Shown in pieces: positions 33,080-49,780 of a stretch of DNA of 64,000 nucleotides. The notes beneath the pieces are model-generated. The model did not search any database and had not been told where the DNA came from. It saw nothing but the letters and a program-made list of their open reading frames with translations. The position numbers and the translations under genes are program-made. The stretch lies in sequence record PP496439.1, one strand, 5' to 3'. Each line of letters starts with the position of its first letter. Position 1 is the first letter of the stretch.

Positions 33080-33111
33080 TGGTTTACCTTAACGCTTCAC
33101 GGTTTCCATCC

Positions 33112-33143
33112 ATTTACACGAGGCCTATGCGCGTGGGGTAAAT
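33112..33143. promoter_or_regulatory. Back-to-back divergent GTAAAT motifs
   Basis: ATTTAC at 33112-33117 and GTAAAT at 33138-33143 between divergent genes. Confidence 0.6.
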
Positions 33144-33206
33144 GAGCGTATAGCAATCGAATGCGTGGAATTAGCCCTTAACGGCGTCCCCACTAGTGGA
33201 GAACAC

Positions 33207-34685
33207 ATGAAATCTGTAGCCGTTGACTACCAAAAGATAGCCAAGGAATGCCAGTGCACCGAGCTGCCTTCCAAGGTAAGAGTTACTCGTGCACGGGTCT
33301 ATCCAAACTTGAGGACGTGCCTACTCTTCCTCAAGTACGATGCCAAAGGTGAACTGGTACAAGCCGAGATCACTGCGCCGTACGACACGTCCACCGAGCC
33401 AAAGGTGAGGGTGCTCAAACATCCTGACAAGAAGTCCGACTTCCTTTCATTATATAGGGCGCTGATCCGCCACCAGATCATACCCGAGTCTATTCCGAAG
33501 AAAGGTAACGGGATTGCACCAACGCTGGAGGTCATCGGCACACTGGTGAGCCTGCTGCCGGAACGGGATGTCGAAACCTTCCGTACGCTGACCCCGGCCA
33601 TCCAGACTGGCAGCGTCATGTACGTCCCGCTGGTCACGTCCCGGCCAATGCCCATGGTGCAACACTGGATACCTGTTGACCAGCATTCAGAGCTGGGCAT
33701 GATCGAGCTGGTCGATACGGATAGCAAGCCTTTCCTTAATCAGTGGGTCAACAGGTTGAGCAACACCGCCACTGGTTATGTGATCTACACCCCCGAAGGC
33801 TCACACGGTCAGGAACTAGCCTGCTTCCGGGTGCCCAATGTGCAAGGGGAGGAACTGTGTGTGGTCAAGAAGGTTGACTTCACCCTGACTGTTGCTCGCA
33901 CGCTCAAGCCGGTACTGACTGTATCCACCAAGAGTACTCGGGCAGTGTCCCGCATTCCCCTACCCCACTATCTGATGCTGCGCAATCACCACATAAAGGT
34001 GGGCACGGTTATTTCCCTGCGTCGTAACGACCGAGGTGGGTTGGTGTACCATGAGACGGTGGCCGAGGAAGGCATGACGCCCCTGCCACTGTGCCCACAC
34101 TGCCACAGTGGCTCTGTGCTGAGAGGTAGTAGCAATGACGTGTACTGCAATAACGATTCATGCCGAGGCCTAGCCATCGTGCGACTTCGCTACATCTTGA
34201 ACAACAAGCTGGACGTCAAGTACCTGAGCGACAATAAGGTAACAGCGCTGATCAATGACAAGCAGGACCTGTTCAGCTTGCTTAAGACACCGACTCACCT
34301 ATTGCGGCACAGAGCGGGCTTCGGTGCACGTACGGTGGATGCGCTGGAAGAGAAGCTGAACACTATCGCCGGTCTTCCACTGCACACGCTGGCCGAGATG
34401 TCCTGCGCTTTCTACAACGTGGGTGTGCCCCCGCTGGATGAGATGGTGTTCAAGAAGATCTTTTCCGTTATGTCGATTGACTACCTGAAAGCACTGCCCT
34501 CCACCGGTAAGATGTACAGCCAGTTGCTCGACATCGAAGGTATCCGCAACAACCGCGCAGTGGCTTTCCTTGCTGGCTGGCCTGCATTTCAACAGTGGAT
34601 GATAGACCTGAACGCTGCCCTACAGTCTCGCAGCGCAATCTCCTCCACGGTAAATAACCCGAAACAAATTCGAGGTGTGAAATGA
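33207..34685 (+). CDS. Degenerate NAD-ligase (LigA)-like protein lacking KxDG; OB, C4 zinc finger and HhH retained
   Basis: LFLKYDAKGELVQAEIT, TVARTLKPV, IKVGTVI, CPHC...YCNNDSC, AGFGARTVDAL; no KxDG or TRGDG. Confidence 0.7.
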   Translation: MKSVAVDYQKIAKECQCTELPSKVRVTRARVYPNLRTCLLFLKYDAKGELVQAEITAPYDTSTEPKVRVLKHPDKKSDFLSLYRALIRHQIIPESIPKKGNGIAPTLEVIGTLVSLLPERDVETFRTLTPAIQTGSVMYVPLVTSRPMPMVQHWIPVDQHSELGMIELVDTDSKPFLNQWVNRLSNTATGYVIYTPEGSHGQELACFRVPNVQGEELCVVKKVDFTLTVARTLKPVLTVSTKSTRAVSRIPLPHYLMLRNHHIKVGTVISLRRNDRGGLVYHETVAEEGMTPLPLCPHCHSGSVLRGSSNDVYCNNDSCRGLAIVRLRYILNNKLDVKYLSDNKVTALINDKQDLFSLLKTPTHLLRHRAGFGARTVDALEEKLNTIAGLPLHTLAEMSCAFYNVGVPPLDEMVFKKIFSVMSIDYLKALPSTGKMYSQLLDIEGIRNNRAVAFLAGWPAFQQWMIDLNAALQSRSAISSTVNNPKQIRGVK

Positions 34686-35446
34686 ACAATCAAAACAGAA
34701 CTCGTATCGCTGTGCTTGTCGGCGGCGGTCTGGACTCACATGCGTACATGGTATTGAAAGCCGACCAGCCTCAGACAGACTTCATTCATGTGGACTACGG
34801 CCAGCGGGTTGCAGTAGCCGAGAGAAACGCCGTGTTGCAAATGGCTGAGAAGCTGGGCATTGCCCGCAGCCGGGTGTACACGCTGATCTGCAACAAGAAG
34901 AATCACATGCGCAAGGTCAATGACGGTGTGGGTGTGTTGTTTGGCACCGGCCCGGTCGAGATGGACAATGCGTTTGTTAAGGGACGTAACCTGTTCCTGA
35001 TTCAGAAGGCCATCGAGCTGGGCTACGGTCACGTGCACTTGACGCTGACCCAAGAGCGTGGCCGGATGTTCCCCGATGCCGATCTGGCATTCGTCCAGCT
35101 GGTTGACAACCTGATGCACCGCAGTTATGACGTGAGGGTATCCGCCCCCTACATCATGGAAGACAAGCATCGGGTGATGTTCAAGGCGTATCGGCATTGC
35201 CCCGAGTTCCTCGATATGTCTTTCACGTGCTGGGTAGGTCCTTATGTGGAATGTGGCACGTGCCCGCACTGCGTCAAGAAGGAAAAGATTCGAGCCGAGA
35301 TGATCGTTGAGAAGATTGAATACGATCTCAGCAAGGATGAACGTGAGGCGCAGTGGGAGCAAGTCAAGGCAGGCTACGGCGACGCGTTGAAGCCCGCTGA
35401 GACCATCAACATGAACATTCAGGTTGTTGACGGAGGACTGAAATGA
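34682..35446 (+). CDS. queC: QueC-like PP-loop ATPase (copy 1)
   Basis: VLVGGGLDS, VDYGQR, FVKGRN, FPDA, TCW...CGTCPHC. Confidence 0.8.
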   Translation: MNNQNRTRIAVLVGGGLDSHAYMVLKADQPQTDFIHVDYGQRVAVAERNAVLQMAEKLGIARSRVYTLICNKKNHMRKVNDGVGVLFGTGPVEMDNAFVKGRNLFLIQKAIELGYGHVHLTLTQERGRMFPDADLAFVQLVDNLMHRSYDVRVSAPYIMEDKHRVMFKAYRHCPEFLDMSFTCWVGPYVECGTCPHCVKKEKIRAEMIVEKIEYDLSKDEREAQWEQVKAGYGDALKPAETINMNIQVVDGGLK

Positions 35447-36153
35447 ACAAGTTCTTAGGTTGGTTCAAGCGTCTGCTGGATAAGAAGCACAAGTCGATCA
35501 CGATGACGTTGACCGACGCCGAAGGTAAGTTGGTCACCATCCACATACCGCAAGGTGCGGGTGTCGAATACACGCTCTCGAAGTCGGGCACCCACTTGAA
35601 CGTCTCAGTTAAAGACGACGTCTTCATGTTGCGCACGAATGGCGCTGGAGTCGGTGGCAGTGGAAGTTCCAAGCCCGGTCTCAACGGTGGCCCCGGCCAT
35701 ACACCTATCCCCCGGTCCCCAAGCTTCACGGGCGCTGGTACGCCGAACTACGGTCACGCAGGCGACCCGCCTGTTGGTGCTCAAGCTTCGTTCCCTATCG
35801 GCGCCCGAGCAACTGTTTCTGGTGGTGGGCGCGTTGGTGGCCTGTCAGGTGGAAGCGCAAACGGCACAATGGCTGGTGGTGGAGATGGCTTCGTTCCCTC
35901 TCCAATCCGTAGCTCTGATCGAGCTTACCTGATTAGAGGTTTGTATTACGTCATCACGACGAAGAAGATAACGGGAGAGCAATACCCGATCCATGAGCTT
36001 CTGCATTGGGGTAAGAAGTCAATCGAACTCATGGGCAAGTTCTCCACCGTCCGAGACGCTATCGACGAACTCAAATTGAAGACGGGTATCCCATTCGAAG
36101 ACCTGACGGACTATCAGGTTGATTCCCTTCCCAAACGACTGTGCAAGCCTTGA
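35443..36153 (+). CDS. Hypothetical protein with Gly/Pro-rich central region
   Basis: ATGA coupling; ~85-aa G/P/S-rich tract. Confidence 0.55.
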   Translation: MNKFLGWFKRLLDKKHKSITMTLTDAEGKLVTIHIPQGAGVEYTLSKSGTHLNVSVKDDVFMLRTNGAGVGGSGSSKPGLNGGPGHTPIPRSPSFTGAGTPNYGHAGDPPVGAQASFPIGARATVSGGGRVGGLSGGSANGTMAGGGDGFVPSPIRSSDRAYLIRGLYYVITTKKITGEQYPIHELLHWGKKSIELMGKFSTVRDAIDELKLKTGIPFEDLTDYQVDSLPKRLCKP

Positions 36154-36191
36154 TCGGGTAAATGGTCCGTAACTAATCCGGAGACACCAGC

Positions 36192-37010
36192 ATGACCACT
36201 GCGCCCCCAAAGATTATCGTTGCATTCAGCGCCGGTACAGATTCAACTACAGCGGCCTACTACTATCGCAAGCTCGGCTATCAGGTAACGCTGGCCGTGT
36301 TCGATGACGGCGCATGCAACGATCCACTTGGCCCTCTGTACGATCCGAACAAGCCGAAGGACTTGACCAACTTCTCGGATGAGTTCTACGATTACGTACG
36401 GATTCACCAAGAGCACACGGAAGGCCATCTTCAGTTCGACTTCGTGGAGATTCGTTATCCGCAACTCGCATTGCTGGAAGCCAACAAGACAGCCAAGCCC
36501 GGTCGGGACAATGCAGCAGCAGCAGAGGCTGACGGCTTGGGCTTCTGGGTCGGCTTCAAGGGCCTGATGGCAATGTTGCTGATGAGCCACGGCGCCGCCA
36601 ATGGTTACGAGGCAGTAGTCTTCGGCCACATGCCGTACAACAACCATTACGAAGATGAGCTGCCCCAGAACTTCGAGCTGCTGCGTCAGTACATGGTTAC
36701 GGCCTATGGCAGCCGAGTGGAAATTCCTCAGATCTACCACCCATTCTATCGACCGAATTTCGATACCAAGGAAAAGGTTATTGAGCTGGCTCAGGCAATC
36801 GGCGTGCCCTTGCGAGATACCTATTCGTGCCGCCGAGGTGAAGTAGAAACCCGAGGTATCCTCCTGCCACTTCTGCGTGGCGGTAACTCCAACTACGTGA
36901 GCCCCACCTACCGTTGGAAGCATTGTGGTACGTGTGAGAACTGTGTCGAACGCAAGCGAGCCTTCGCGGCGCTGGGCATGAAAGATCCTGCCCCTTATAT
37001 GGAACATTGA
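36192..37010 (+). CDS. queC: QueC-like PP-loop ATPase (copy 2, divergent)
   Basis: VAFSAGTDST, TYSC...HCGTCENCVERKRAF. Confidence 0.75.
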   Translation: MTTAPPKIIVAFSAGTDSTTAAYYYRKLGYQVTLAVFDDGACNDPLGPLYDPNKPKDLTNFSDEFYDYVRIHQEHTEGHLQFDFVEIRYPQLALLEANKTAKPGRDNAAAAEADGLGFWVGFKGLMAMLLMSHGAANGYEAVVFGHMPYNNHYEDELPQNFELLRQYMVTAYGSRVEIPQIYHPFYRPNFDTKEKVIELAQAIGVPLRDTYSCRRGEVETRGILLPLLRGGNSNYVSPTYRWKHCGTCENCVERKRAFAALGMKDPAPYMEH

Positions 37011-37011
37011 T

Positions 37012-38028
37012 ATGGCCCTTTCAATCTGGCCGCTGACCGAAGGTGAACTCGGTCAGGGCCTCGTCAACGAACTGAATCGTACCAGCAAGGCGCTGGTGAA
37101 CCGGAGTATGTGGTCTTTGCCATTGCTCCGGCGTTTGTTTTATCGGCGCACCGAGATTGGTGTCCCGGAGCTACTCCACGTCTGTACCAGCATTCATCGG
37201 GGCAAGACTTACTTCTGCCTGTTGGTGAACTTCCGAGATGTGGTGATGGGCAACCCCGAGCAATACGGATGGGACCTAGCTGGCCGGTGGTTGTTCTACG
37301 ATGTGGATCTGCTGGATACCCCGGAGTTTAAACAGGTAAACGCGGCTATTCGTAAGGTGGCTACGGTCAACACGGTTACCTACGGTCAAGCATTCGTTCC
37401 GGATGAAGGTGGTATGGGGGAGGAGCACTGGATCAAGAAACTGAAAGGTAACTACCGCCCCCACATCTTCGGCGAAAAGTCAAAACAGGTTATCGTCAGT
37501 CAGACCTGCGGACACGCGGCTACTCACGTTCTGACCGAGGCAGTGATGTCATTCGGTATCCAGCGCGCTGAGAGATTTCTCGCGGAAGGTCAGTCGGATG
37601 TCATGCCGGAGTTGTATGACCTACCCATGCAGCTAGCCGGTCTAGGCTCGATCCCTGGAACCCGGATTGGCACCGTGTCGCTCACCTGCCGGGATACCCG
37701 TGCGCTGATCGGTACCCTGTCGTTCTACGTTGTGGCAGGCTTGGGTCACAGTGATATCTTGTATATGCACGAGATGCTGATTGATCCGGATCCGAAGTGG
37801 AAGCCTCTATCGGTGGCCGTCAACTTGCACATTCAGGCAATCATGTATGTGCGCTATCTAAACAGCCGATCTGATCGGGCTTCGGACTTGGTTATCAACC
37901 TCGGATTCAACTTGGACGAGAAGTACAACACATACAAAGAGGTGTTCCGTCCGAACAAGTCCGAAATGGAAATCTATACCGGCATGCACACCGAGCCCGG
38001 CGTCCCACTGTCCTGTTTCAAGGGGTAA
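37012..38028 (+). CDS. Putative GNAT/FemABX-like transferase
   Basis: C-terminal INLGFNLDEKYNTYKEVF resembles the C-terminus of its paralogs. Confidence 0.45.
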   Translation: MALSIWPLTEGELGQGLVNELNRTSKALVNRSMWSLPLLRRLFYRRTEIGVPELLHVCTSIHRGKTYFCLLVNFRDVVMGNPEQYGWDLAGRWLFYDVDLLDTPEFKQVNAAIRKVATVNTVTYGQAFVPDEGGMGEEHWIKKLKGNYRPHIFGEKSKQVIVSQTCGHAATHVLTEAVMSFGIQRAERFLAEGQSDVMPELYDLPMQLAGLGSIPGTRIGTVSLTCRDTRALIGTLSFYVVAGLGHSDILYMHEMLIDPDPKWKPLSVAVNLHIQAIMYVRYLNSRSDRASDLVINLGFNLDEKYNTYKEVFRPNKSEMEIYTGMHTEPGVPLSCFKG

Positions 38029-38031
38029 GAC

Positions 38032-39033
38032 ATGTACACTCCGTATTCCCAAAACAGTCTGATGCAATCGATCCCGTTGGATGACCAAGGTACATTCGCC
38101 CATCCGCCGTATACGATGGAAGGAGAGTTAACCGACGTGTGGACGAACCCCAACCTATATGGGTTCGTCAGCCTGTTGAACGGCCAGAGCAATAGCCGGG
38201 CCTATCGAGACTGGATGACCACCCACAATCTTCCAGCACTGTTCCTCGGTCCGCATCATGAAGACAACTTCTGGTTTGAATTCAGCACTGGTCTCTATTC
38301 CAACTGCACGCTGGATTACAACGAGATCAACGTCCAAGGCAACCTGCAGGACTTCCTTGGGAGATTGACGTCATCTCGCCGTCGCTCCGTGCTCAAGGCA
38401 AAGGAAACGGATACAATGATCCACAAGGCAGGCTCGGTAGCCAACTTCAACCTGTATCATCCGGTGGAGGGTAGGCTGTATAGTCTTACCGCGATTCACG
38501 AACGCCGGGTGATGAAAGATATTTCAGAGTTTATCGAATCGAAACTTTGGAGTATGAAGCAGACGCCTACTGACCTCACGTACGGGGCATTCACCACTCT
38601 GATGGACTACATCCGGTTGAAGCAGCGAGAGGATACGCCACTCGGCCACCTACTGCGCGCCGTTCATCTATTGGTCATTCGAGACGAACGTTCAGGGTTT
38701 ATCGTGTCGGTACACCTGGTGGCGATCAACACGTTGAAAGATGATCGCCATAATCCTATCAAGACCTACTTGCACTCCTTTGCGCGCATCACTGTTCTCC
38801 CTGCACGTATCGCCCTACTCGCGTTGATCAAGGTGGTTCAAGAGTTAAACGTCACTAGTCAGTACGCGTCCCGTACACTGGCGAAGATTGACTATCTTGA
38901 CGTGAGCAACGTGGTGCTGTCCGAGCGAGAGCAGTACAAGTCGGACTTCTTCACCGGCAAATGCCAAGTGCGTGCGTGGGCATCCCCGGCGCTGCTGGAA
39001 CGACAGTTACCTTTCGTTACGCCGATCCCGTAA
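38032..39033 (+). CDS. Putative GNAT/FemABX-like transferase
   Basis: QDFLGRLTSSRRRSVLKA helix; C-terminal YLDVS...EQYKSDF. Confidence 0.5.
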   Translation: MYTPYSQNSLMQSIPLDDQGTFAHPPYTMEGELTDVWTNPNLYGFVSLLNGQSNSRAYRDWMTTHNLPALFLGPHHEDNFWFEFSTGLYSNCTLDYNEINVQGNLQDFLGRLTSSRRRSVLKAKETDTMIHKAGSVANFNLYHPVEGRLYSLTAIHERRVMKDISEFIESKLWSMKQTPTDLTYGAFTTLMDYIRLKQREDTPLGHLLRAVHLLVIRDERSGFIVSVHLVAINTLKDDRHNPIKTYLHSFARITVLPARIALLALIKVVQELNVTSQYASRTLAKIDYLDVSNVVLSEREQYKSDFFTGKCQVRAWASPALLERQLPFVTPIP

Positions 39034-39087
39034 CTCTGTAAATGATGGGAACAGCCCCACCATCACTTCATCTCTAGGGTAGTTCCC

Positions 39088-40140
39088 ATGCAAGACTTCG
39101 ATAAGATAATGATCGATAGTAGTTTGACATCCAATCTGGTGTACGCAGGGTTGGGTAACTTGATCACGCCCCGCGCACTTGACCTGCTGATCGAACATCA
39201 GGCTGCACTGGAAAACGTATACGCCAATCTGGAAACAGCGTATCAGATTACCCCACCCTTCCCCTGTGAAGCTGCATTCAATTACCCTGACAAAGATCCT
39301 GTGCTGGTCGCCGACTATCTGAATGCTACTCCCGCCATCCGTTGCGGAGAGCTGGCTGGATTCGAGGCAAAGCCCGGCAGTTACTACCATGCGCCCGCCG
39401 CTGGTATCTCCCCGGAACATCGCATCGACGTACGTGGTATGTCTTTGCGTGAGTTCGACCACTATCTGGTTGAGCGTAAGGAAGTATCCCGTATCACTAC
39501 CAATCTGGTGGCCGACAAGTTCCGCTGTGAGACGCATGTGTACAAAGTGGATGAAGATCATATCCTGATCCATGACGCCGAACGAGTTGGGATCAGCCAG
39601 ACGGACTTCCGCCGCATGTGGGCGCAGACCCGCCGCCGGGAAATCGCTGAAAACTATCTGCAGTACATGCCCATCGAAGACTCCGCCAAGGATGATCAGG
39701 TGGTGCGACTGATCAACGAAGACGTAGCACGGGTGTTAGCCCAGAACGTCGACTACGACCGCATGATTCCGCCCGAGCTGATCTTCGATGGTCAGGGCAA
39801 GCCGGTGCTGACCGTGCTGAAAGATTGCAACGCCAAGGTGTTGGGCATTGGTGTGTACGTCATCTACAAGTCAGCTGACCCAGAGCATGACAGCGAACTG
39901 CACTGGCGTGGCGCTTTCTACGATCACGAAGATCCTCGCGTAGCATCCATGGGCATTGAACACGCTCTGGTTGCCAGCGCACTGCACACAGCGTACGCCT
40001 GCAACGCGGTCCTCTATCTGACCAAGGCACCTAAGTCCGTGTGTGACGCATGGAAGACGGAAGTGCACCAAGGTTACGGGCTGGTCCGTAATGCGATGCC
40101 GGAACTGTCTGACACCCCTTACATTCTGGCTATCCAGTAA
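39088..40140 (+). CDS. Putative aminoacyl-transferase-like GNAT (FemABX/Arg-tRNA transferase-like)
   Basis: DFRRMWAQTRRREIAEN; AFYDHEDPRVASMG...VLYL resembles the FYD...SLG...YL pattern. Confidence 0.45.
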   Translation: MQDFDKIMIDSSLTSNLVYAGLGNLITPRALDLLIEHQAALENVYANLETAYQITPPFPCEAAFNYPDKDPVLVADYLNATPAIRCGELAGFEAKPGSYYHAPAAGISPEHRIDVRGMSLREFDHYLVERKEVSRITTNLVADKFRCETHVYKVDEDHILIHDAERVGISQTDFRRMWAQTRRREIAENYLQYMPIEDSAKDDQVVRLINEDVARVLAQNVDYDRMIPPELIFDGQGKPVLTVLKDCNAKVLGIGVYVIYKSADPEHDSELHWRGAFYDHEDPRVASMGIEHALVASALHTAYACNAVLYLTKAPKSVCDAWKTEVHQGYGLVRNAMPELSDTPYILAIQ

Positions 40141-40173
40141 ATAGCCGGTAACTCCATCCATTGAGGTACTTCC

Positions 40174-42258
40174 ATGAAATCCGTGAACCCCATCTTCAAA
40201 CACGTTCCCCAGTTCGACTGGCCTGTCATTCCCCGTGCGCAGTGGGAAGAGATCGTCAAGGGAAAAGAGCATGTGATGTTCGACTCCTTCTCGCAGCTCG
40301 CTCAAGTGTTGGCTATCCCGGTGAGCAGTTACCAGTTCTACTTCGAAGATGGGTCCACGTTGTTCGCCGGTCCCGAAGCAACCTTCACCGCCGCGCCGTA
40401 CCCGCTGTATCAGGACCTTGAATTCGTCCTGACCCCTGACGAGACGTTGGTGCCGGGTCTTGCACTGGATACCAAACCGTGGGGCCTGTACACCGACGAA
40501 TGGGTGGACAACTACGAAGGTGCGGACAAGGAAGACATCGGCAACAAGACCGGGTTCGAATTCATTCCGCTGTCGGACGCCTTGAAACTGGTGGTCCTCA
40601 ACACGGAGACCATGCAGCTCCAGTACACTGCAATCGAGAGCTTCACGTACGACGGCGTGACTTACGTATACCTGCTGGCCGATGGCGTGTGCTGGGTACT
40701 GGCGGGCAAGTCCGGTGGTCTGGTTGCCAGCGAGCATGACAAAGGTGCTGCGTTCATCATGGTGTCCCATCCCGAGTTCGCCGGGTGCAGCGTAGACAAC
40801 ATGTACCCAAGTGAGTTCGGTGAAGCGGAAGCGACGTTCTACGTTCAAGACGAGGAACACAATTACCTGGACGCGGCTAACCGCATCTTCGAGGAAGCCA
40901 AGGACGTAGGCGCTGGCACTTTCCTGACCATTGAGACCGGGGATGGACTGCCGACGGCACTGGCCTACAACCTGCGTTACAGTGACGTGGCCCACGTTAA
41001 CCTGCCGATGCACAACATCCACCAGTTCACGTCTCTTCACGTACGACTGGGCGAGACGCCTAACTTCTCCGAGGCCCCGGAAGCGTGCCGCATGAAAGAG
41101 GTGATGGAGTACCTGGCGGACCCCGAGTCCCCGGTAGACCATTACTGGTCTGCCATCATGGTACTGGAGAAGAACTTCCCCGGTTTCGCCGACGCCCTGA
41201 AAGACTCCAGTGTCCCAACCCGTGACATCGTGCACTCCAAACAGGCGTTCAGCTTGGAGATCGATCGCCAGTTCGGCAAGGAAGTGGCAAGCAAGATCGG
41301 CCTGAACACTGGCGTATTCGCCCAAGTGAAAGACCGTGATGAGTGGCTGACCCGTCAAGACGATTTTCCTACCGACAAGGTGGCCGTCAAGTACAACACC
41401 AAACACTTCATCGGCATCTTCGACAAGGACGAGGTATCGAATTCCATCAACATGTGGCTGGCCGGTCAACCCGGAGAGTCGCTGATGATCGAAGAGTACT
41501 TCGGTGAGGGCAATCAGGAATTCAACCTGTGCTATGTGATCAACGAAGAGTTCGTGCAGCCGACGCTGTTCCTGTGCGAAGTCAACAAGATCCTCGGTAA
41601 TGACACCGGCGGCAAAGGTGGCAACACGCTGGCCTGCCATGATGCTCGTATTAACAAGTACCCTGAGTTCTTTGAGCCGGTCAATGCTGCGCTTGCTAAC
41701 CTGCATGAGCACGTGGAAGGTGTGAAGGGCTGGGTTGACCTGAGCTTCATGGTCCGCGACGGCATCCCTTACTTCACAGAGTGGTGCATTCGAATTGGCT
41801 GCTCCAACAACGCCACCATCGTGCGCCAGATGGAGACCCCGCTCGACGTTCTGCTGACCAACGTGGTTAACAAGGTGCATACCGAGCTGTCTTGGAAGCA
41901 CTCCATGTCTGTCAGCGTGGACATCTACAGCATGCCGCTGTCCGCAGGCAATGATGCCAACATGCAGTTCACCGAGTCGCTGACCACGCCGGTCGAGATG
42001 GTGTCCCCGCTCAATCTGGAACTGGCGGCGGAGAGTTTCTTCGACCCGATTGATTCGGCCTGGAACGCGGTGTACGACGGCTACATTGTCGAGGCGTACA
42101 ACCGATATGGCACCGTCTCGGGGTATTCCACCAACTGGAACTTCGCCTGCAATGCGGCGTACAATCACTTGAAAGATCAGTCGGTGTTGTACGGGGCATA
42201 CCGCGAAGCGCCTGCCCACCACGACCCACTGACTCTGTTCCCTTTCCTCAAGGCGTAA
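40174..42258 (+). CDS. ATP-grasp ligase, PurD-like C-terminal half, with a large unknown N-terminus
   Basis: VAVKYN, LMIEEYFGEGNQEF, GNDTGGKGG, MVRDGIPYFTEWCIRIG. Confidence 0.7.
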   Translation: MKSVNPIFKHVPQFDWPVIPRAQWEEIVKGKEHVMFDSFSQLAQVLAIPVSSYQFYFEDGSTLFAGPEATFTAAPYPLYQDLEFVLTPDETLVPGLALDTKPWGLYTDEWVDNYEGADKEDIGNKTGFEFIPLSDALKLVVLNTETMQLQYTAIESFTYDGVTYVYLLADGVCWVLAGKSGGLVASEHDKGAAFIMVSHPEFAGCSVDNMYPSEFGEAEATFYVQDEEHNYLDAANRIFEEAKDVGAGTFLTIETGDGLPTALAYNLRYSDVAHVNLPMHNIHQFTSLHVRLGETPNFSEAPEACRMKEVMEYLADPESPVDHYWSAIMVLEKNFPGFADALKDSSVPTRDIVHSKQAFSLEIDRQFGKEVASKIGLNTGVFAQVKDRDEWLTRQDDFPTDKVAVKYNTKHFIGIFDKDEVSNSINMWLAGQPGESLMIEEYFGEGNQEFNLCYVINEEFVQPTLFLCEVNKILGNDTGGKGGNTLACHDARINKYPEFFEPVNAALANLHEHVEGVKGWVDLSFMVRDGIPYFTEWCIRIGCSNNATIVRQMETPLDVLLTNVVNKVHTELSWKHSMSVSVDIYSMPLSAGNDANMQFTESLTTPVEMVSPLNLELAAESFFDPIDSAWNAVYDGYIVEAYNRYGTVSGYSTNWNFACNAAYNHLKDQSVLYGAYREAPAHHDPLTLFPFLKA

Positions 42259-42261
42259 TCC

Positions 42262-43425
42262 ATGAGCACTCCATTCCAAGAGTTCACCCTAGAAGGGTGG
42301 ATTCGCTACATGAGAGATGAAAGCATCATCTGGCGCGCGTACGCTGATGGTCATCCGGATAAGGTCGAGTTCAGCCCGGAGTGGCGTGACGAGATGTATC
42401 GGTTGATGGTGCAGTTCAAAGATCTGCTGCCGATGTCGTTTTCCAATCCGGTGTACGGCTTCACTGAAGGTTGGCTGGAAGGGCTCGGACTCCAGCCCTT
42501 TTATGGCGATGATCCGTTCAATCCGATGGTGCAACCGCTTAGCCACCCTCTGGTGCATGTGGGGCTTCCGTTTACTCTGAGCGAGCTGACGGCGGGCGTA
42601 TGGGACTGTCAGTCCCTGAGCGCTCACCTGGAGCGTCCGCTGCTGGTCGATACATTCGAACCGATCCCAGTGCCATCTATTAGCCTGGACGCTTACAAAG
42701 CCGTCCTGACCGTACGGGACCGGGAAGAGATCGTGATGAGTGCGGGAACCCCGGTGAACTACTTCCTCTGGTTGAATAGTCCGATCACCGAACTCAAAGA
42801 CGACTTCGACGTTTATCTGGCCAGCCTGACCAAGAAGCGCCGCTACAAAGTGAAGCAGGCACTGGCGACAGTGGGCACCGAAGAGAACCCGGCTATCAGC
42901 GTCAGTACTGGATCTCGTTTCGGCGAAGGGTTGTTGTCCGATCAGGTGAACAGCATCCTCGCGACTTTCGAAGATCCGGTGGACATCGAGTGCATGCTTC
43001 TTCAGCTGCTGTTCGGGGTGGCAACCTGCAATACCCATCCGCATCTTGTCGATCTGGTTTGTGCAGACCAGCAGTTGGGGATCTTCATCAAGCGCAACGG
43101 CCACACGATGAATTTCCTCTACAACCGTGACCCGGACAACCGCGCTGACTCAGGCATCAACCTGCTGACCCAGTACGTGCGCCATCTGCACATGAACCGC
43201 CCGGAAGGTGTGATGTACGTGGACCCGACATGTCGATATCGGCCTGACGAGGACAGTATGAACACCTACAAGCGGGTGATCACCAACGAGAACCGGTATC
43301 ACCCAATGCCGTTCGTCTCGGCTGACCCTGCGCATATTGAAGGTGTGATTACCCCGGCGTTCATTGCAGGTCATTGGCAGATGTCGGCGTCCAATGGCCC
43401 GGCCAATCCTGAGATGATGGAGTAA
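42262..43425 (+). CDS. Putative GNAT/FemABX-like transferase (Acetyltransf_6-like)
   Basis: DDFDVYLASLTKKRRYKVKQAL; C-terminal YVDPT...NTYKRVI. Confidence 0.6.
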   Translation: MSTPFQEFTLEGWIRYMRDESIIWRAYADGHPDKVEFSPEWRDEMYRLMVQFKDLLPMSFSNPVYGFTEGWLEGLGLQPFYGDDPFNPMVQPLSHPLVHVGLPFTLSELTAGVWDCQSLSAHLERPLLVDTFEPIPVPSISLDAYKAVLTVRDREEIVMSAGTPVNYFLWLNSPITELKDDFDVYLASLTKKRRYKVKQALATVGTEENPAISVSTGSRFGEGLLSDQVNSILATFEDPVDIECMLLQLLFGVATCNTHPHLVDLVCADQQLGIFIKRNGHTMNFLYNRDPDNRADSGINLLTQYVRHLHMNRPEGVMYVDPTCRYRPDEDSMNTYKRVITNENRYHPMPFVSADPAHIEGVITPAFIAGHWQMSASNGPANPEMME

Positions 43426-43427
43426 CC

Positions 43428-44375
43428 ATGGCAAAGCACAAGGTCAAAAGGTTGGAAATCAACCACATCTACGACTTCTACCCGTTGTATCAGGTGATGT
43501 ACGGGCGTGGCATGGAGACCAAAGCGTTCGAGGTCTCCAAGTTCGCCAAGATGGTGCTGGACTTCGAAGCATCAACCAGTACTCGCCGGAAGTGGGACGT
43601 GCTGGAACCTTTCAGCGGTATCAGCGAGCATGAACACTTCTTCGCTGCGACCGGCCTGAACATCGAGCATTACACCGGCATGGACATCGTGGTTCCAGAT
43701 GGAGCCAAAAACGTCATTCAAGGCGACATCATCACCGACACCCTTCCGTTTCACGTCAACGCGGTGTTCGCCTTCTACTACAGCTTGCAGAATGTACGGG
43801 ACGCCAAGACTGGCATGCACACGCGGGAAAAGCTGGTGGAGTTCTTCGACAACATCCTCGGCCATCTGCAAGTCAATGCGAACAAGAGCCGTATGCCCGC
43901 AGTGTTCGCTTTCCACCTTGACCAGCCTGAAGACCCTAATTACTATCTGACGTCCCGTGCCGACGTTGGAGGTGAACAGTCATGGACCGCACCCGCGTGT
44001 GGTCTGCTGGGGCAGTGGGTCAAGTGCAAACCGACTGACACTCTGGAAGTGAAGTGCAATCTGGACACCTGGTACAACCGTGTGCAGTGCACCGCGTACG
44101 ATCAGGCGGAGGATATCCAGATTCTGGTAAATGGGCGAGTAGTGGCGACCGTTGAGATCGAACAGCCGTTCACTCATCGGGTCTGGACCGAGCATGAGGT
44201 GATCGACATCCTGCGGGGTCTGGACTACAATCTGCACTTCCACATGTACAACGGCACCATCTCCAATTACGACTTCTTGATGACCCGTTTGGAAGACAAG
44301 CCCGTTCCCGGCTATGAAGAGGCTAATACTAATCAGATGACAACTGATATGCTGGTTGTCGTTAATCCGAGGTAA
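43428..44375 (+). CDS. Class I SAM-dependent methyltransferase-like protein
   Basis: VLEPFSG, YTGMDI, IQGDIIT. Confidence 0.65.
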   Translation: MAKHKVKRLEINHIYDFYPLYQVMYGRGMETKAFEVSKFAKMVLDFEASTSTRRKWDVLEPFSGISEHEHFFAATGLNIEHYTGMDIVVPDGAKNVIQGDIITDTLPFHVNAVFAFYYSLQNVRDAKTGMHTREKLVEFFDNILGHLQVNANKSRMPAVFAFHLDQPEDPNYYLTSRADVGGEQSWTAPACGLLGQWVKCKPTDTLEVKCNLDTWYNRVQCTAYDQAEDIQILVNGRVVATVEIEQPFTHRVWTEHEVIDILRGLDYNLHFHMYNGTISNYDFLMTRLEDKPVPGYEEANTNQMTTDMLVVVNPR

Positions 44376-44377
44376 TA

Positions 44378-45295
44378 ATGGCTAAGCCCAAGATCCCTAC
44401 ACGAACCATCCCCACGTTGTACCAAGACTGGGGGTTGTACAGCGCCATCTGCGAACTGCCGCAGGAGACGATGCTGATGATGTCGCGCTTCGTGGCAGAC
44501 CGGACCATCGAACATGCCGAGCGCCATGACCTGGAAAGTGTGGCGATCATGGAGCCCTTTAGCGGGCCGATCCCGTATTACGAGCCAGACATCCGAAGCT
44601 TCCTGACTCGCGCCCGTGTTGACCTGGATACGTACGATCATGTCGAGTACCTTGATCATGGTGGATTGTCGGAAGACAACAATATCATCATCGGTGACAT
44701 CACCACCATCGACCTGAAACAGAAATACGACGTCATCTACGGCAGTTACGGCAGCTTGGCCTGCCTGCTGCTGGATCACACGCACAACAAAGCTTACGAG
44801 AAGTCGCACGCGGCGCTGGTCAACATTCGCGAGCACCTGAAACCCAACGGCATCTTCGTCCTGAACGCCAACGGATCCAGCGAAAGCCTGCTGAATAACC
44901 TGTTGAACTCCGATGAGCCGGATCAAGAGATTCGCGTCCGTCCGGGATCGCAGTTGGGCAAGGCGTTCCGAATCAAACCAGACAGTAACGCGCTGCTTCG
45001 TTTCTCCTACAACGTGGAGTACGACCGACGCACCACCTGCACCATGTGCCACTACAGCGATATGGTGCTGTCTGTAAATGGAGTTGACATCCAGCGCTGG
45101 GAGGTGGAATCCCCGACGTATCTTGCGCCGCTGGATGAACCCGAACTAATTCGAATGGCAGGTATGGCTGGTTTCAATCTGGAAAACACTGAGTTCTACG
45201 GATTGGACACCACCGGTTATCCTGCCTTCTTCAAAATGGATACGGTCTGCGACGGGTCATGGTCACCCGCCGAGTTCGTAGTCTTTCGCACCTAA
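44378..45295 (+). CDS. Class I SAM-dependent methyltransferase
   Basis: IMEPFSG, IIGDITTIDLKQKYDVI, IREHLKPNGIFV. Confidence 0.8.
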   Translation: MAKPKIPTRTIPTLYQDWGLYSAICELPQETMLMMSRFVADRTIEHAERHDLESVAIMEPFSGPIPYYEPDIRSFLTRARVDLDTYDHVEYLDHGGLSEDNNIIIGDITTIDLKQKYDVIYGSYGSLACLLLDHTHNKAYEKSHAALVNIREHLKPNGIFVLNANGSSESLLNNLLNSDEPDQEIRVRPGSQLGKAFRIKPDSNALLRFSYNVEYDRRTTCTMCHYSDMVLSVNGVDIQRWEVESPTYLAPLDEPELIRMAGMAGFNLENTEFYGLDTTGYPAFFKMDTVCDGSWSPAEFVVFRT

Positions 45296-45305
45296 CGAGG
45301 TTCCT

Positions 45306-46541
45306 ATGAGCGTTATCATCCCCACCGTAGCGATGGAGAGTGGTCAGCCAGACATGATCATTCAAGGCTGTTCCACGGGTCGCCTCTCTATGGCCGAGCC
45401 TAACGAGAGCGCCAAACCTAAGTCTTCCAAGAAGCTGTACGAACGTGAAGACCTGATGGCGTACGACAGCGAGTCGGAGCACTGGCAGAAGCAGTTGGCC
45501 CGCCGCTACGCTCACCACGGTGAGATGGTCGGTGTGTTGAACAACGTCGAGGTGGTGCCGGAAGCCACCTATCAGAACTTCGACATGAAGATCACCCCGT
45601 ACACCGCGCAGTTGATGGACCAGAACGACCCCAACTGCCCGATCCGTTTGCAGTACATGCCGACCAATAAAGAGCTGGAGTCGATTCAGCGCGAAGAGAC
45701 CATGCACAACGAGCTGGGCGAGGAAGAGGACACCATCCCCGGTACCTCGGTCGTGCATCGCTACCCGCGTCGTGTCTTGTTCCTGACCACTACCCAATGC
45801 GCCAGCTTCTGCCGTTACTGCACCCGTGCACGCATAGTCTCCCACGGCGGCGAAGCGGCGATCACCAAGAAGCACCTTGACGCCAGCATCGACTACATCG
45901 CCGGGAACAAGGACATCGAAGACGTGCTGCTGTCCGGCGGTGACCCGTTCATCCTCCCAGACAACAAGCTCGACGAGATCCTCGGTCGTATCCGTGCTGA
46001 AGCACCTCACGTTCGCTTCCTGCGTATTGGTAGCCGACTGCCGGTCCAGATGCCGACTCGTATCACTCCAGAGCTGTGCGAGATTCTGGAACGCCACAAT
46101 GTCAACATGGTCAACATCCATGTGAACCATCCGAAAGAAGTAACCCCTCTGCTGGCCTCCCGGATGAAGATGTTGCGCAAAGCTGGCGTGATGATCGGCA
46201 ATCAGGCCGTCATGCTGAAAGGCGTGAACGACTCCATCCAGGTGATGACCGAGCTGTGCTTGCGTATGGTCGAGATGGGCGTCCGTCCGTACTACGTCTA
46301 CTCCAACGATCCGGTGGCCCAGGCCGCACACTTCACCGTGTCGCTGAAAGAGATGCTGAATATCAACGAGGGTATGCGTGGCTTCCTGTCTGGCCCGGCT
46401 ATGCCAACCTTCGTGGTAGACGGCGTGGGTGGCTTGGGCAAGATGCCGGTGCAGAAAGAGTACGTCGGCTTCGATAAGAACGGCGGTATCTTCGCCCAGA
46501 ACTTCGAAGGGAAAACGGCCCGCATGCCCCATCTGGAATAA
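45306..46541 (+). CDS. kamA: Lysine 2,3-aminomutase family (radical SAM, PLP)
   Basis: ITPY...CPIRLQ, HRYPRRVL, CASFCRYCTR, LLSGGDP, HVNHPKE, NQAVMLKGVND, YYVYSND, FVVDGVGGLGKMP. Confidence 0.93.
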   Translation: MSVIIPTVAMESGQPDMIIQGCSTGRLSMAEPNESAKPKSSKKLYEREDLMAYDSESEHWQKQLARRYAHHGEMVGVLNNVEVVPEATYQNFDMKITPYTAQLMDQNDPNCPIRLQYMPTNKELESIQREETMHNELGEEEDTIPGTSVVHRYPRRVLFLTTTQCASFCRYCTRARIVSHGGEAAITKKHLDASIDYIAGNKDIEDVLLSGGDPFILPDNKLDEILGRIRAEAPHVRFLRIGSRLPVQMPTRITPELCEILERHNVNMVNIHVNHPKEVTPLLASRMKMLRKAGVMIGNQAVMLKGVNDSIQVMTELCLRMVEMGVRPYYVYSNDPVAQAAHFTVSLKEMLNINEGMRGFLSGPAMPTFVVDGVGGLGKMPVQKEYVGFDKNGGIFAQNFEGKTARMPHLE

Positions 46542-46692
46542 GCGTTCCCAGACACTCCCTAGTTCCATTGTACAAGCTTCAAATGCCCCATTTGCGCTAG
46601 GTCCTGTAAATGGGGTTGCTTATCAGCGTTGCAATGTGTTACGCTGGATTGGACCCATATTATTCCGATAACCGAACCACCGAGGTATCACC

Positions 46693-47124
46693 ATGAGCTT
46701 CTCCGTAACCGTAGCTGCACAGACCATCGCTGCCCCCGAGTCGCTGGGTAGCCCGAAAGGCATCAGCGTCCTCGAAGCCAACGAAGGCTTTGCTGTCATC
46801 GAATTCCAACGTCCTCGCGCCTCGAAGCGTGACCAGATTGCCGTCCCTCGCGTCCAGATCCTTTCCCTGAGCCACGGCAGCGCCGACGGCGACAGCGGTT
46901 ACCTGATCGCTCAAGGCATGGCCGGTGTGGCCGACGAATTCGAAGCCGCAAGCTTCACCATCGAAGGCAACGTTGCCACGTTCGTGACCGCTGAAGGCGC
47001 CACTATCGAAACCGACGCACGTCTGACCCGTATCCTCGCTTACGGCGTGGAAGAGGGCGAAAACAGCCTGCTGGGTAAGCCGGAAAAGAAAGTAAAACCG
47101 AAAGCAAGCACCAAGAAGAAGTAA
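46693..47124 (+). CDS. Hypothetical protein, likely highly expressed, with Lys-rich tail
   Basis: Own GTAAAT motif (46606), GAGG RBS, own terminator, biased codons. Confidence 0.75.
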   Translation: MSFSVTVAAQTIAAPESLGSPKGISVLEANEGFAVIEFQRPRASKRDQIAVPRVQILSLSHGSADGDSGYLIAQGMAGVADEFEAASFTIEGNVATFVTAEGATIETDARLTRILAYGVEEGENSLLGKPEKKVKPKASTKKK

Positions 47125-47153
47125 TCAACACGGCCCGCGCCGGTTGAACTAAG

Positions 47154-47185
47154 AAAAAGCCCCTTCCGTTTGGTTGGGGCTTTTT
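47154..47185 (+). terminator. Rho-independent terminator
   Basis: AAAAAGCCCC...GGGGCTTTTT. Confidence 0.85.
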
Positions 47186-47204
47186 CGTTATACCGAGGTG
47201 TCCC

Positions 47205-47525
47205 ATGGCTAAAGACAGATTCCTGATCTACTCCAAAAACTGCTTAGGGTGTAAACACCTCGTTGATGGAGCCAAGAAGACCTACACTGCGTGTCACTAC
47301 AGTGAAGGCAACGAACGCTGCCCCGCGCAGTACGTCCAGATTATTACGGGTGTGGATATCCATGCCTTGGCTACTGAGTTGGCAGACGCCATCAGGGCTA
47401 ACAATTCCAAGAAGTACGATCGGGTGAATGCCAAGATCGGTAAATTGGACACTGTGATTGCCAGCAGCGTGAAGCTGGCCGCAGACAACCTAATAGCAGG
47501 GGCCGGTGATGGCGAAGGTAAATAG
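47205..47525 (+). CDS. Small Cys/His (zinc-binding?) protein
   Basis: CLGC...CH...C; GAGG RBS; overlaps the topoisomerase B start. Confidence 0.65.
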   Translation: MAKDRFLIYSKNCLGCKHLVDGAKKTYTACHYSEGNERCPAQYVQIITGVDIHALATELADAIRANNSKKYDRVNAKIGKLDTVIASSVKLAADNLIAGAGDGEGK

Positions 47526-49479: not shown

Positions 49480-49564
49480 TCCGCCCCATTGCATACCCCG
49501 ATCCGTTGCGCCCCGCCTGGAGCGTTATACGCGGTCGGGTAAATGCTGGGTAGTGAGGTGAGTC

Positions 49565-49780
49565 TTGCGCAATACAACGATGAAGTCGGTCAAGTGCACG
49601 ACGTGCAAAGGTGAGGGATTCACGGTGGACACGTCTCGGTCCAAAGGATCGATGGATGAACAGATCAACAAGTGCTACACGTGCAAAGGCGAGAAAGTAG
49701 TAATCGTCAAGATTGTTGATCCGTCCCCGGAAGATCAAGTCAATCCGTACGCTGCCCTATACGAACAGGATAAGAAGTAA
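49565..49780 (+). CDS. Small DnaJ-type zinc-finger protein
   Basis: CTTCKGEG and CYTCKGEK. Confidence 0.65.
   Translation: MRNTTMKSVKCTTCKGEGFTVDTSRSKGSMDEQINKCYTCKGEKVVIVKIVDPSPEDQVNPYAALYEQDKK

Follow-up and report, generated by a model that had tools for sequence, protein, structure and literature searches.

A compact gene cluster occupies positions 34682-46541 of the window, the 64,000-nucleotide stretch that was analysed (positions 124001-188000 of record PP496439.1). The sequence belongs to Pseudomonas phage vB_PpuM-Amme-1 (Amme-1), a jumbo phage with the host Pseudomonas putida. The genes are all located on the + strand with intergenic distances of -4 to 54 nt, so the co-orientation and tight packing reported in the preliminary description are borne out; the number of genes is 11 rather than ten. 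The cluster and its upstream neighbour comprise the following features:

33207-34685, + strand: LigA-like protein (OB fold, Zn finger, helix-hairpin-helix), by synteny with 'ligA' of Vibrio phage GR7B
34682-35446, + strand: QueC-like PP-loop ATPase A (Pfam QueC 6.9e-19, full length)
35443-36153, + strand: protein of 236 aa with a Gly/Pro-rich central region (dN/dS 0.19)
36158-36163, + strand: GTAAAT promoter-like element (further copies at 33138, 34650, 39038, 40137 and 46606)
36192-37010, + strand: QueC-like PP-loop ATPase B (Pfam QueC 2.8e-12)
37012-38028, + strand: 338-aa protein (dN/dS 0.10)
38032-39033, + strand: 333-aa protein (hhalign, hmmsearch and motif)
39088-40140, + strand: 350-aa protein (position; orthologue in L011)
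40174-42258, + strand: PurD-like ATP-grasp amide ligase with an N-terminal part, 694 aa (NCBIfam purD and BLAST clustering)
42262-43425, + strand: FemABX-type tandem-GNAT protein (Pfam matches of relatives, AF2 model and Foldseek)
43428-44375, + strand: methyltransferase-like protein 1 (paralogue of 44378-45295)
44378-45295, + strand: methyltransferase-like protein 2 (sub-cutoff profile matches)
45306-46541, + strand: KamA-family radical SAM/PLP lysine 2,3-aminomutase (TIGR00238, 2A5H)

Comparison with phage Peetri revealed purifying selection on all 11 cluster genes (dN/dS 0.09-0.25). Eight related loci were compared: Amme-1, GR7B/GR11A, L010/L011, L014/L017, PhiXhv-12, L020, L021 and L022. 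The Gly-rich ORF has no match in Pfam, PHROGs or the other loci, and its dN/dS indicates that it is a real gene. The LigA-like protein (dN/dS 0.07) shares 28% identity with GR7B 'ligA', which is found at the matching position. The GR7B copy gives sub-cutoff matches to DNA_ligase_OB and HHH_2; the Amme-1 copy has no match in Pfam or PHROG and no recognisable adenylation domain. This gene forms the syntenic head of the cluster, and its membership of the module is uncertain.

The GTAAAT element was found at all four positions previously reported (34650, 36158, 39038 and 40137). No enrichment was observed across the whole window (19 copies observed vs 13.4 +/- 3.5 expected). Its placement is far from random: the element lies 20-90 nt upstream of 7 of 15 gene starts (P about 7e-12), and the + strand between 33000 and 51000 carries 12 copies vs 1.9 expected. 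The element is retained in Peetri. It is common to the cluster and the replication genes, which suggests co-expression.

Both predicted QueC-like ATPases were confirmed by their Pfam matches. When aligned with the canonical QueC substrate signature (as defined in PMC13082051), QueC-like A retains most of the key elements (YGQ, VKGRN, FPD and the Zn cysteines). This protein shares 31% identity with QueC 1 of L020. QueC-like B, an orthologue of QueC 2 of L020 (8e-12), contains the PP-loop SAGTDS and the Zn cysteines. In the alignment, YxQ and RN are absent and a 30-residue insert is located within the Zn motif; the predicted pocket is remodelled.

Four FemABX/GNAT-like proteins had been proposed, and this assignment stands for 42262-43425. 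Searching 1.84 billion representatives yielded 92 relatives of this protein; among the 85 scanned, 7 match Acetyltransf_6 and 2 match FemAB_like. Its AF2 model (pLDDT 89.3, pTM 0.89) matches Sbb17/Sba18, MprF, FemX, FemA and Ate1 in the PDB (Foldseek, best E 2.7e-7). The tandem-GNAT fold is shared with Sbb17/Sba18 and FemX/MprF (E 2.7e-7 to 1e-4, probability 1.00), whereas the identity is 8-14% and the TM-scores are only 0.36-0.49. The protein is probably an aminoacyl-tRNA-dependent aminoacyl transferase. The best structural matches are the aminoacyl-tRNA-dependent Sbb17/Sba18 bound to streptothrisamine, and the analogy with streptothricin drawn earlier is apt. Both contexts involve beta-lysine or glycine amide formation; in contrast to the streptothricin pathway, the cluster contains no streptolidine or gulosamine genes.

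The remaining three candidates are less clear. The 333-aa protein is marginal: it contains an 'L..L(T/S)..RR..V.KA' motif in common with the FemABX-like family and matches the 85-sequence FemABX-like profile over 29 residues (hhalign E 2.8e-4, probability 41%), and hmmsearch gave E values of 0.005-0.4 for it and its orthologues. An orthologue is present in L011. By these comparisons it is a probable distant paralogue of the family. The 338-aa and 350-aa proteins have no match in Pfam, PHROGs, NCBIfam and the other libraries searched. The former aligns co-linearly with the 42262 family in hhalign, though not significantly (E 0.11), and may be a distant tandem-GNAT paralogue. The latter corresponds by position to a second conserved family (GR7B 9639 type), to which it is weakly linked (E 0.08 for the Peetri orthologue).

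The proposed ATP-grasp enzyme is supported, though the match of the protein itself is sub-cutoff (NCBIfam purD 3.7e-7, residues 354-586). It groups by BLAST with ~460-aa proteins of L020/L021/L022, which match Pfam GARS_A, and its best PDB match is PurD 2xcl (E 0.13). BLAST-alignable relatives begin at about residue 227, and the N-terminal 230-350 residues lie outside the ATP-grasp match. The two proposed methyltransferases are a paralogous pair with a weak methyltransferase signal. Protein 2 gives sub-cutoff matches to Pfam Methyltransf_31 (0.042) and Methyltransf_12 (0.092) and to the NCBIfam daptide methyltransferase (0.016). Protein 1, which has orthologues in L010, L019, L020 and L022, gives no significant match of its own in the libraries searched, including Pfam, and is methyltransferase-like, probably of class I and SAM-dependent. 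The lysine 2,3-aminomutase is confirmed by TIGR00238 (275 bits, cutoff 199) and 2A5H (7.5e-79). In the 2A5H comparison C125/C129/C132, R134, D293, D330 and K337 are all conserved, and the lysine-binding residues are intact. KamA shares 51% identity with the Vibrio phage copy. Of the nine enzyme assignments that had been claimed, three are unverified and two, the methyltransferase calls, are weak. The broader claim of a small-molecule enzyme cluster in a phage holds: the cluster is conserved, and its gene content supports beta-amino-acid, amide-forming and PP-loop chemistry.

Genes of the 7-deazaguanine pathway are encoded elsewhere in the Amme-1 genome. FolE (Pfam 3.8e-39) and a QueE-like enzyme (phrog_2076 2.3e-41) lie outside the window, and a scan of 46 unannotated ORFs detected one TGT match (4.6e-8) and one PTPS/QueD-like match (9.7e-8). 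The reported absence of FolE, QueE and DpdA is true within the window; for QueD it is uncertain because of the PTPS match. The claim that a plain 7-deazaguanine pathway cannot explain the cluster is not supported, since FolE and QueE-like, PTPS/QueD-like and TGT-family proteins are encoded in the same genome. Amme1_00106, located ~75 kb away from the cluster, is a TGT-family (DpdA-like) transglycosylase with DSGG and CNCPVC motifs, both of which are spanned by the match to ArcTGT 1iq8. Its assignment as DpdA3 was rejected, as a 120-sequence HMM finds nothing. This TGT type was found in 20 of 50,697 phage records, 16 of which belong to the three module-bearing phage groups.

A FemABX-like family member lies beside QueC or Gat-QueC in Amme-1 and the seven other loci. 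A PurD-like ATP-grasp gene also lies beside it in all loci except the Xanthomonas one (6/7 besides Amme-1). In eight loci of very different sequence, which are usually placed among replication genes, FemABX-like and QueC genes are interleaved, with gaps of 1-3 nt or overlaps. The ArcS-core domain PF17884 is matched above cutoff in the Vibrio and Xanthomonas versions; searches of Amme-1 detected no ArcS domain. The same-genome deazaguanine genes and the FemABX-like/QueC context suggest that 7-deazaguanine is most likely the base that carries the adduct, rather than a compound that the adduct replaces.

We therefore predict, with about an even chance of being right, that the cluster is a tailoring module for an aminoacylated, methylated 7-deazaguanine installed in the phage's own DNA, the best fit of the three destinations previously considered. 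Beta-lysine and other amino acids are most likely attached to the 7-deazaguanine base. In the proposed pathway, GTP would be converted to 7-carboxy-7-deazaguanine (CDG). QueC-like A, in which the CDG-pocket residues are kept, would adenylate the carboxylate to form an amide or nitrile, or an amide with an amine. Beta-lysine would be supplied by KamA, the side chain would be lengthened via amide bonds by the ATP-grasp enzyme and the aminoacyl-tRNA-dependent transferase(s), and its amines would be capped by the methyltransferases. The DpdA-like enzyme would install the deazaguanine base in phage DNA in place of guanine, before or after tailoring.

Known phage 7-deazaguanine DNA modification employs DpdA with FolE/QueD/QueE/QueC, plus ArcS2, Gat-QueC, QueF and DpdL/M/N (Hutinet 2019, Cui 2023). 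Amme-1 resembles these systems in its FolE, QueE-like, PTPS-like, QueC-family and TGT-family proteins, its replication-gene setting and its relatives with ArcS-core or Gat-QueC. Conversely, it has no canonical QueC, and its TGT is not DpdA3. ATP-grasp, FemABX-type transferase, KamA and methyltransferase-like genes occur in no deazaguanine pathway described in the literature searched. Lysine chemistry is tied to 7-deazaguanine in the archaeal ArcS/RaSEA archaeosine pathway, in which lysine is transferred by ArcS onto preQ0 (PMC11298593) and then cleaved, and ArcS-core recurs in the Vibrio/Xanthomonas versions. However, the radical SAM enzyme of the cluster is an aminomutase, no RaSEA-type enzyme was recognised, and the likely substrate is DNA rather than tRNA. 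Phage thymidine hypermodification (SP10, PhiW-14, ViI and M6), which places amino acids or polyamines on 5-hmdU, similarly decorates a DNA base with side chains derived from amino acids and involves radical SAM and PLP enzymes, whereas the base and the enzymes differ. No M6-like phage was present among the 19 records matched by KamA in tblastn. The QueC-family enzymes Cap9 and QatC join 7-deazaguanine, in its carboxyl/amido form, to the amine of an N-terminal glycine. This amide between CDG and a non-ammonia amine is a chemical precedent for the proposed step, although these enzymes belong to bacterial defence with protein acceptors and other partners, which were not seen in the Amme-1 cluster with the libraries searched.

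Among the alternatives, all unlikely, the strongest is that the deazaguanine genes produce a known modification (dPreQ0, dADG or dG+) and that the KamA, ATP-grasp, GNAT and methyltransferase genes are unrelated, serving for example N-acetyl-beta-lysine-type solutes or envelope aminoacylation. The small GNAT after KamA in Vibrio phages recalls the AblA/AblB pair, envelope targets are known for the FemABX and MprF relatives, and KamA appears accessory because it is absent from L020 and L022. The interleaving of the FemABX-like gene, and in all but one locus the ATP-grasp gene, with QueC would be unexpected for unrelated genes.

Ranking next, and doubtful, is a freely diffusible conjugate of a peptide with a nucleobase or nucleoside (either a peptidyl-7-deazapurine or a peptide of beta-lysine without deazaguanine) targeting the host or competitors. 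The substrate of Sbb17/Sba18 is an antibiotic intermediate and thus a small molecule, PurD and KamA likewise work on small molecules, and the core enzymes have no DNA-binding domain in Pfam. Co-occurrence with the rare TGT-family transglycosylase and the usual location among replication genes argue against such a product, as does the lack of an exporter or self-resistance gene in the cluster (Pfam and PHROGs; NCBIfam for 10 of 11 genes).

Improbable is the deazaguanylation of a protein (the Gly-rich 236-aa product, a virion or a host protein), perhaps as counter-defence. N-terminal deazaguanylation is known for the QueC family, the remodelled pocket and Zn-motif insert of QueC-like B recall QatC, and a small ORF lies between both QueC-like genes. 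However, the NCBIfam QatC match is just 0.035, no QatA/B/D, CD-NTase or Cap10 partner was found in the libraries searched, no homologue of the Gly-rich ORF was detected in the other loci compared, and such a reaction would not account for the TGT and ArcS-like genes. Insertion of a queuosine- or archaeosine-like base into host or phage tRNA, reprogramming translation, is very improbable: TGT, ArcS and QueC originate as tRNA-modification families, but the phage TGT-type enzymes tested so far all insert into DNA (PMC10516641), at most one tRNA is predicted in the genome, inside a CDS, and the module lies among replication genes.

Tailoring of phage DNA is favoured by the FolE, QueE-like, PTPS and TGT genes; by the rarity of the TGT type and its near confinement to module-bearing groups; by the FemABX-like gene beside QueC/Gat-QueC, ATP-grasp and replication genes; by ArcS-core in relatives and the lysine transfer known for ArcS; by the Cap9/QatC precedent; by the intact lysine-binding residues of KamA; and by the GTAAAT element shared with replication genes. 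Several points were counted against it: the distance of the TGT gene, the lack of a canonical QueC and a detected ArcS domain in Amme-1, the weak methyltransferase calls, and the lack of a function call for the three ~340-aa ORFs, the Gly-rich ORF and the N-terminal 230-350 residues of the ATP-grasp protein. Moreover, KamA, an oxygen-sensitive enzyme, would have to work in an aerobic host. To our knowledge, no FemABX-type enzyme acts on a nucleic-acid base; the known substrates are small molecules, proteins, lipids and precursors of the cell wall. A peptidyl base is bulky and would strain the transglycosylase pocket, so the order of the steps is tentative. The predicted modification would likely serve to shield phage DNA against restriction and further defences that sense DNA. 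If true, it would represent a DNA hypermodification so far undescribed.

The window matches the genome of Pseudomonas phage vB_PpuM-Amme-1 (PP496439.1, 202,198 bp) with 100% identity, and window base 1 corresponds to record base 124001. P. putida KT2440/PaW85 is the laboratory host of Amme-1, a lytic jumbo myovirus of P. putida in genus cluster G3 of the CEPEST collection; the paper on these phages does not discuss the cluster at 34682-46541 (PMC7616413). In the deposited record, two cluster genes are named 'QueC-like' and all of the others are hypothetical. The preliminary description listed ten co-oriented, tightly packed genes; the orientation and the packing hold, and the number is corrected to 11 genes on the + strand, which are separated by gaps of -4 to 54 nt. 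A LigA-like gene (33207-34685) lies directly upstream and overlaps the first cluster gene by 4 nt. The cluster genes are as follows.

34682-35446 (+), QueC-like protein A
35443 (start, +), Gly-rich protein
36192-37010 (+), QueC-like protein B
37012-38028 (+), ~340-aa protein
38032-39033 (+), ~340-aa protein
39088-40140 (+), ~340-aa protein
40174-42258 (+), ATP-grasp protein, 694 aa
42262-43425 (+), FemABX-like protein
43428-44375 (+), methyltransferase-like protein
44378-45295 (+), methyltransferase-like protein
45306-46541 (+), KamA protein

The cluster genes and the LigA-like gene are kept in all eight other G3 phages with 88-98% DNA identity. Relative to Peetri, the most distant G3 phage, dS is 0.3-1.0 and dN/dS is 0.07-0.25 for each gene, and this low ratio throughout indicates that all of the genes are functional. 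Two antisense ORFs that face the ATP-grasp and KamA genes, at 39871-42279 (-) (802 aa) and 45231-46568 (-) (445 aa), were rejected as by-products of coding sequence with 55% GC.

QueC family membership is confirmed for both A and B (Pfam 6.9e-19 and 2.8e-12). The two proteins were aligned with a true QueC, that of Vibrio phage GR7B (Pfam 2e-60), and read against the canonical QueC signature (Libby et al., PMC13082051). A retains the PP-loop, YGQ, xRN, aromatic-P-D and the zinc cysteines; B retains the PP-loop and the cysteines alone and carries a 30-residue insert. With the signature partial in A and B remodelled, no canonical QueC is found in Amme-1, and the host could supply this enzyme. These phage paralogues lie outside the scope of the QueC-family survey.

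The protein at the end of the cluster belongs to the KamA family (TIGR00238, above cutoff). It aligns with Clostridium lysine 2,3-aminomutase 2A5H at 7.5e-79 and keeps residues C125/C129/C132, R134, D293, D330 and K337 of that enzyme. We take D293 and D330 of 2A5H to bind the lysine epsilon-ammonium, K337 to be the PLP lysine and the three cysteines to belong to the radical SAM cluster. Against the Lys, Glu and Arg aminomutase equivalog models the phage protein scores below cutoff each time, and the substrate call is therefore based on the conserved active-site residues. In combination with prior structural knowledge of 2A5H, these residues point to lysine as the substrate and beta-lysine as the predicted product. 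M6-type thymidine hypermodification was rejected after a KamA tblastn search, in which no such phage was present among the 19 matched records.

The 42262-43425 protein itself has no match in Pfam, PHROGs, NCBIfam or PDB sequences. A word-indexed homologue search returned a handful of relatives, and an exhaustive search with a profile built from six relatives gave a wider family of 92 members among 1.84 billion representatives. Of the 85 members scanned, Acetyltransf_6 is matched by seven (best 3.8e-8) and FemAB_like by two. The AlphaFold2 model from the 85-sequence alignment has a pLDDT of 89.3 and a pTM of 0.89; an earlier model from a 6-sequence alignment had a pLDDT of 55 and non-significant GNAT matches. 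The best Foldseek match of the model in the PDB is Sbb17/Sba18 with streptothrisamine (E 2.7e-7), followed by MprF, the alanyl- and lysyl-phosphatidylglycerol synthases and FemX, and then by FemA and Ate1, with a probability of 1.00 throughout. Aminoacyl-tRNA-dependent transferases account for 20 chains among the top 22 matches. The TM-scores are modest (0.36-0.49) and the identity is 8-14%, so this is an assignment of fold and class, not of orthology. As modelled, the protein is a tandem-GNAT fold common to FemX, MprF and Sba18, and this result covers one of the four ORFs that had been described as FemABX/GNAT-like. Among the other three, 38032-39033 is marginal, with one basic motif in common with the family (hhalign 2.8e-4), 37012-38028 reaches an E of 0.11 and 39088-40140 gives no signal. 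Paralogy among the ~340-aa ORFs is not established by hhalign. PDB sequence and profile searches were uninformative for the FemABX-like and methyltransferase-like families, the ATP-grasp protein and the ORFs at 38032, 39088 and 37012.

The donor for Sbb17/Sba18 is Gly-tRNA. ARAGORN predicts a single tRNA-Gly(GCC) in Amme-1 at record 8184-8261 (+), inside the CDS Amme1_00006, which may be a false positive; the prediction is of interest given that the closest structural matches of the FemABX-like protein act on a streptothricin-type scaffold. Locus tag 00007 is absent from the record.

Half of the 694-aa protein (40174-42258) is a PurD-like ATP-grasp, with a purD match at 3.7e-7 that scores 29 bits where the cutoff is 288, and a weak match to Pfam GARS_A (0.046). 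By BLAST it groups with shorter relatives in the comparison loci L020, L021 and L022 that match GARS_A; no relatives were found in scans of IMG/VR and JGI metagenomes. The two methyltransferase-like proteins (~310 aa) are paralogues of each other. The methyltransferase match is weak (Pfam 0.04-0.09) and limited to one paralogue, a PDB profile search with the family gave no match, and the candidate SAM motif 'EPFSG' is a by-eye reading.

A LigA-like protein with an OB fold, a Zn finger and HhH heads the cluster in Pseudomonas and Vibrio phages alike. No adenylation domain is recognisable in it, and it may be a DNA-binding, ligase-like protein that is split or non-catalytic. A hidden transglycosylase was rejected, with OB and HhH domains alone being detectable. 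Amme-1 further encodes a complete NAD-dependent ligase, and a 160-aa fragment named 'DNA ligase' adjoins DHFR (record 41008-41490 and 122868-124847 for these ligase-related genes). A 365-aa thymidylate-synthase homologue with ~100 residues of insertions is encoded at record 26809-27906 (Pfam 1e-55).

Vibrio phages GR7B and GR11A carry a shorter syntenic cluster, which is flanked by the same helicase and topoisomerase genes. The gene content of the comparison loci is as follows.

GR7B/GR11A, genes 1-4: LigA-like protein, ArcS-core protein, true QueC, QueC-like protein
GR7B/GR11A, genes 5-9: 340-aa protein, FemABX-like protein, ATP-grasp, KamA, small GNAT
L010 and L011, two short contigs: gene order as in Amme-1
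L014/L017, 238-kb metagenomic scaffold: Gat-QueC, FolE, GNAT, ATP-grasp
Xanthomonas phage PhiXhv-12 (L019:9424-18681): ArcS-like protein, FemABX-like protein (3.7e-65), Gat-QueC; further genes for a leucyl/phenylalanyl-tRNA-protein transferase (by annotation), PIG-L-type deacetylase, glycosyltransferase
L020, 167-kb NCBI contig: orthologues of QueC-like A and B, FemABX-like protein, GARS_A ATP-grasp, methyltransferase-like orthologue; QueE-like enzyme nearby
L021, 182-kb scaffold: Gat-QueC
L022, metagenomic contig: three QueC genes

The FemABX-like gene adjoins QueC-type genes in eight of eight loci, Amme-1 included. A PurD-like ATP-grasp is listed in seven of them, the exception being the Xanthomonas locus. 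The ArcS core of GR7B/GR11A (PF17884/DUF5591) scores 28-31 bits (cutoff 26) and carries the PC-x3-KPY motif as PCAPDKPY; PF17884 has no match among the Amme-1 cluster proteins. The composition of the PhiXhv-12 cluster hints at a version of this theme with glycosylation. Variation between lineages, of the kind expected for tailoring genes, is seen in the small GNAT, KamA, the glycosyltransferase, the methyltransferase-like proteins and the ArcS-like domain.

The hexamer GTAAAT, first noticed upstream of four cluster genes (34650, 36158, 39038 and 40137), is found at each of these positions. The window as a whole holds 19 copies against 13.4 +/- 3.5 expected, which is no enrichment; the + strand of 33000-51000 holds 12 against 1.9 expected (P 7e-7). 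GTAAAT lies 20-90 nt upstream of 7 of 15 gene starts (P about 7e-12), a strongly non-random placement, and copies are retained in Peetri despite saturated synonymous change. Further copies at 46606, 47440, 47518, 49539 and 50882 (+) precede post-cluster genes that include topoisomerase II. Amme-1 encodes its own sigma factor, and we infer that GTAAAT looks like a promoter element of replication-class genes.

FolE, QueE and DpdA had been reported absent, which is correct for the window; FolE, a QueE-like protein and a TGT (the transglycosylase family that includes DpdA) are present outside it. The QueE-like gene and FolE adjoin the DNA polymerase gene. A Pfam scan of 46 unannotated genome ORFs gave one TGT match (4.6e-8) and one PTPS/QueD match (9.7e-8); the ORF behind the latter was not localised by motif, jackhmmer or PDB search. 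The TGT candidate is the following gene.

Record 81781-83151, Amme1_00106, 456 aa, TGT with DSGG and CNCPVC motifs

Its alignment with the archaeosine tRNA-guanine transglycosylase 1iq8 (E 0.0015) spans the catalytic Asp motif and the zinc site, and Amme-1 is thus predicted to encode a TGT-family guanine transglycosylase. Among 50,697 phage records, 20 contain a homologue. These are from nine G3 phages; from Vibrio phages GR7B and GR11A (52% identical, with a TGT-domain annotation); from five PhiXhv-12-like Xanthomonas/Erwinia phages; and from NCTB, BCSR5 and Motura, the last with two records that carry a tRNA guanine transglycosylase annotation. Other candidates were rejected. Searches for DpdA3 by tblastn and with a 120-sequence HMM of phiST CGPG_00065 found nothing in the genome, the gene between QueE and FolE, considered as DpdA or QueD, is a sliding clamp, and the 359-aa ORF at 57510-58589 is not TGT-like. 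The corresponding clamp gene of GR7B seems to be split (L008:7926-8336 and 8334-9128), its N-terminal part being unannotated in another frame, the cause being a frameshift or a gap in the annotation. GR7B also has an annotated acyl carrier protein gene (record 152570-152905), placed two genes upstream of the gene with the TGT domain; two ~330-aa genes separate them.

CDG (7-carboxy-7-deazaguanine) is made by FolE, QueD and QueE, and its carboxylate is adenylated by QueC. PurD joins an amino-acid carboxylate and an amine, and aminoacyl groups carried by tRNA are passed to amines or hydroxyls by FemX, MprF and Sba18. QueC-family Cap9 and QatC link the amine of a glycine to a 7-deazaguanine, ArcS transfers lysine to preQ0 (PMC11298593), and DpdA-type TGTs insert deazaguanines into phage DNA post-replication (PMC10516641). 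In the proposed pathway, the module would attach beta-lysine to the C7 substituent of a deazaguanine, through an amide made by QueC-like A or B in Amme-1 and through an amidine made by the ArcS-like protein in the Vibrio phages. The chain would be lengthened by the ATP-grasp and tRNA-dependent steps and then methylated, and the TGT would insert the deazaguanine base into DNA. Judged by gene content, the chances that the module serves amino-acid tailoring of 7-deazaguanine for phage DNA are about evenly balanced. The fuller proposal is distinctly more tentative: several jumbo phage lineages may carry, on DNA 7-deazaguanine, a peptide-like side chain of beta-lysine and further residues, N-methylated and built by aminoacyl-tRNA-dependent FemABX-type transferases and a PurD-like ligase.

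To our knowledge, eight 7-deazaguanine derivatives occur in phage DNA, all with small side chains. That Amme-1 makes one such known small modification and that the rest of the cluster is unrelated to it is unlikely, since the genes are tightly interleaved across divergent loci. A free peptidyl-nucleobase metabolite, the next alternative, is likewise improbable in view of the TGT co-occurrence and the replication-gene setting. Defence-like protein deazaguanylation is quite improbable: the cluster holds none of the QatC/Cap9 partner families in Pfam and NCBIfam, and the QatC/Cap9 model does not fit, the NCBIfam QatC match being 0.035 with 13 bits against a cutoff of 280. Modification of tRNA has the slimmest chance of all.

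Amino-acid tailoring of DNA 7-deazaguanine remains the preferred reading. The jumbo-phage survey of Iyer et al. covers plain deazaguanine systems only, and no amino-acid tailoring module on deazaguanine was found described in the full-text literature searched. We file the Amme-1 system as a candidate for phage 7-deazaguanine DNA modification of a known kind with a putative tailoring module that is unprecedented in that literature. At least six phage groups of divergent sequence carry the module, as do 92 clusters in a library of 1.84 billion proteins. If the reading is correct, this would be the first DNA base modification with charged tRNA as the building-block donor, a new chemical class of deazaguanine hypermodification and a new non-translation use of aminoacyl-tRNA, and the addition of amino acids to a base would enlarge natural DNA chemistry. 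Two observations on the G3 jumbo phages, the very low DNA yield with a standard phage DNA kit and the >1000-fold protection by P. putida prophages (PMC7616413), would be worth revisiting if their DNA is hypermodified. Such a modification might explain how these jumbo phages meet restriction, CRISPR or glycosylase defences.
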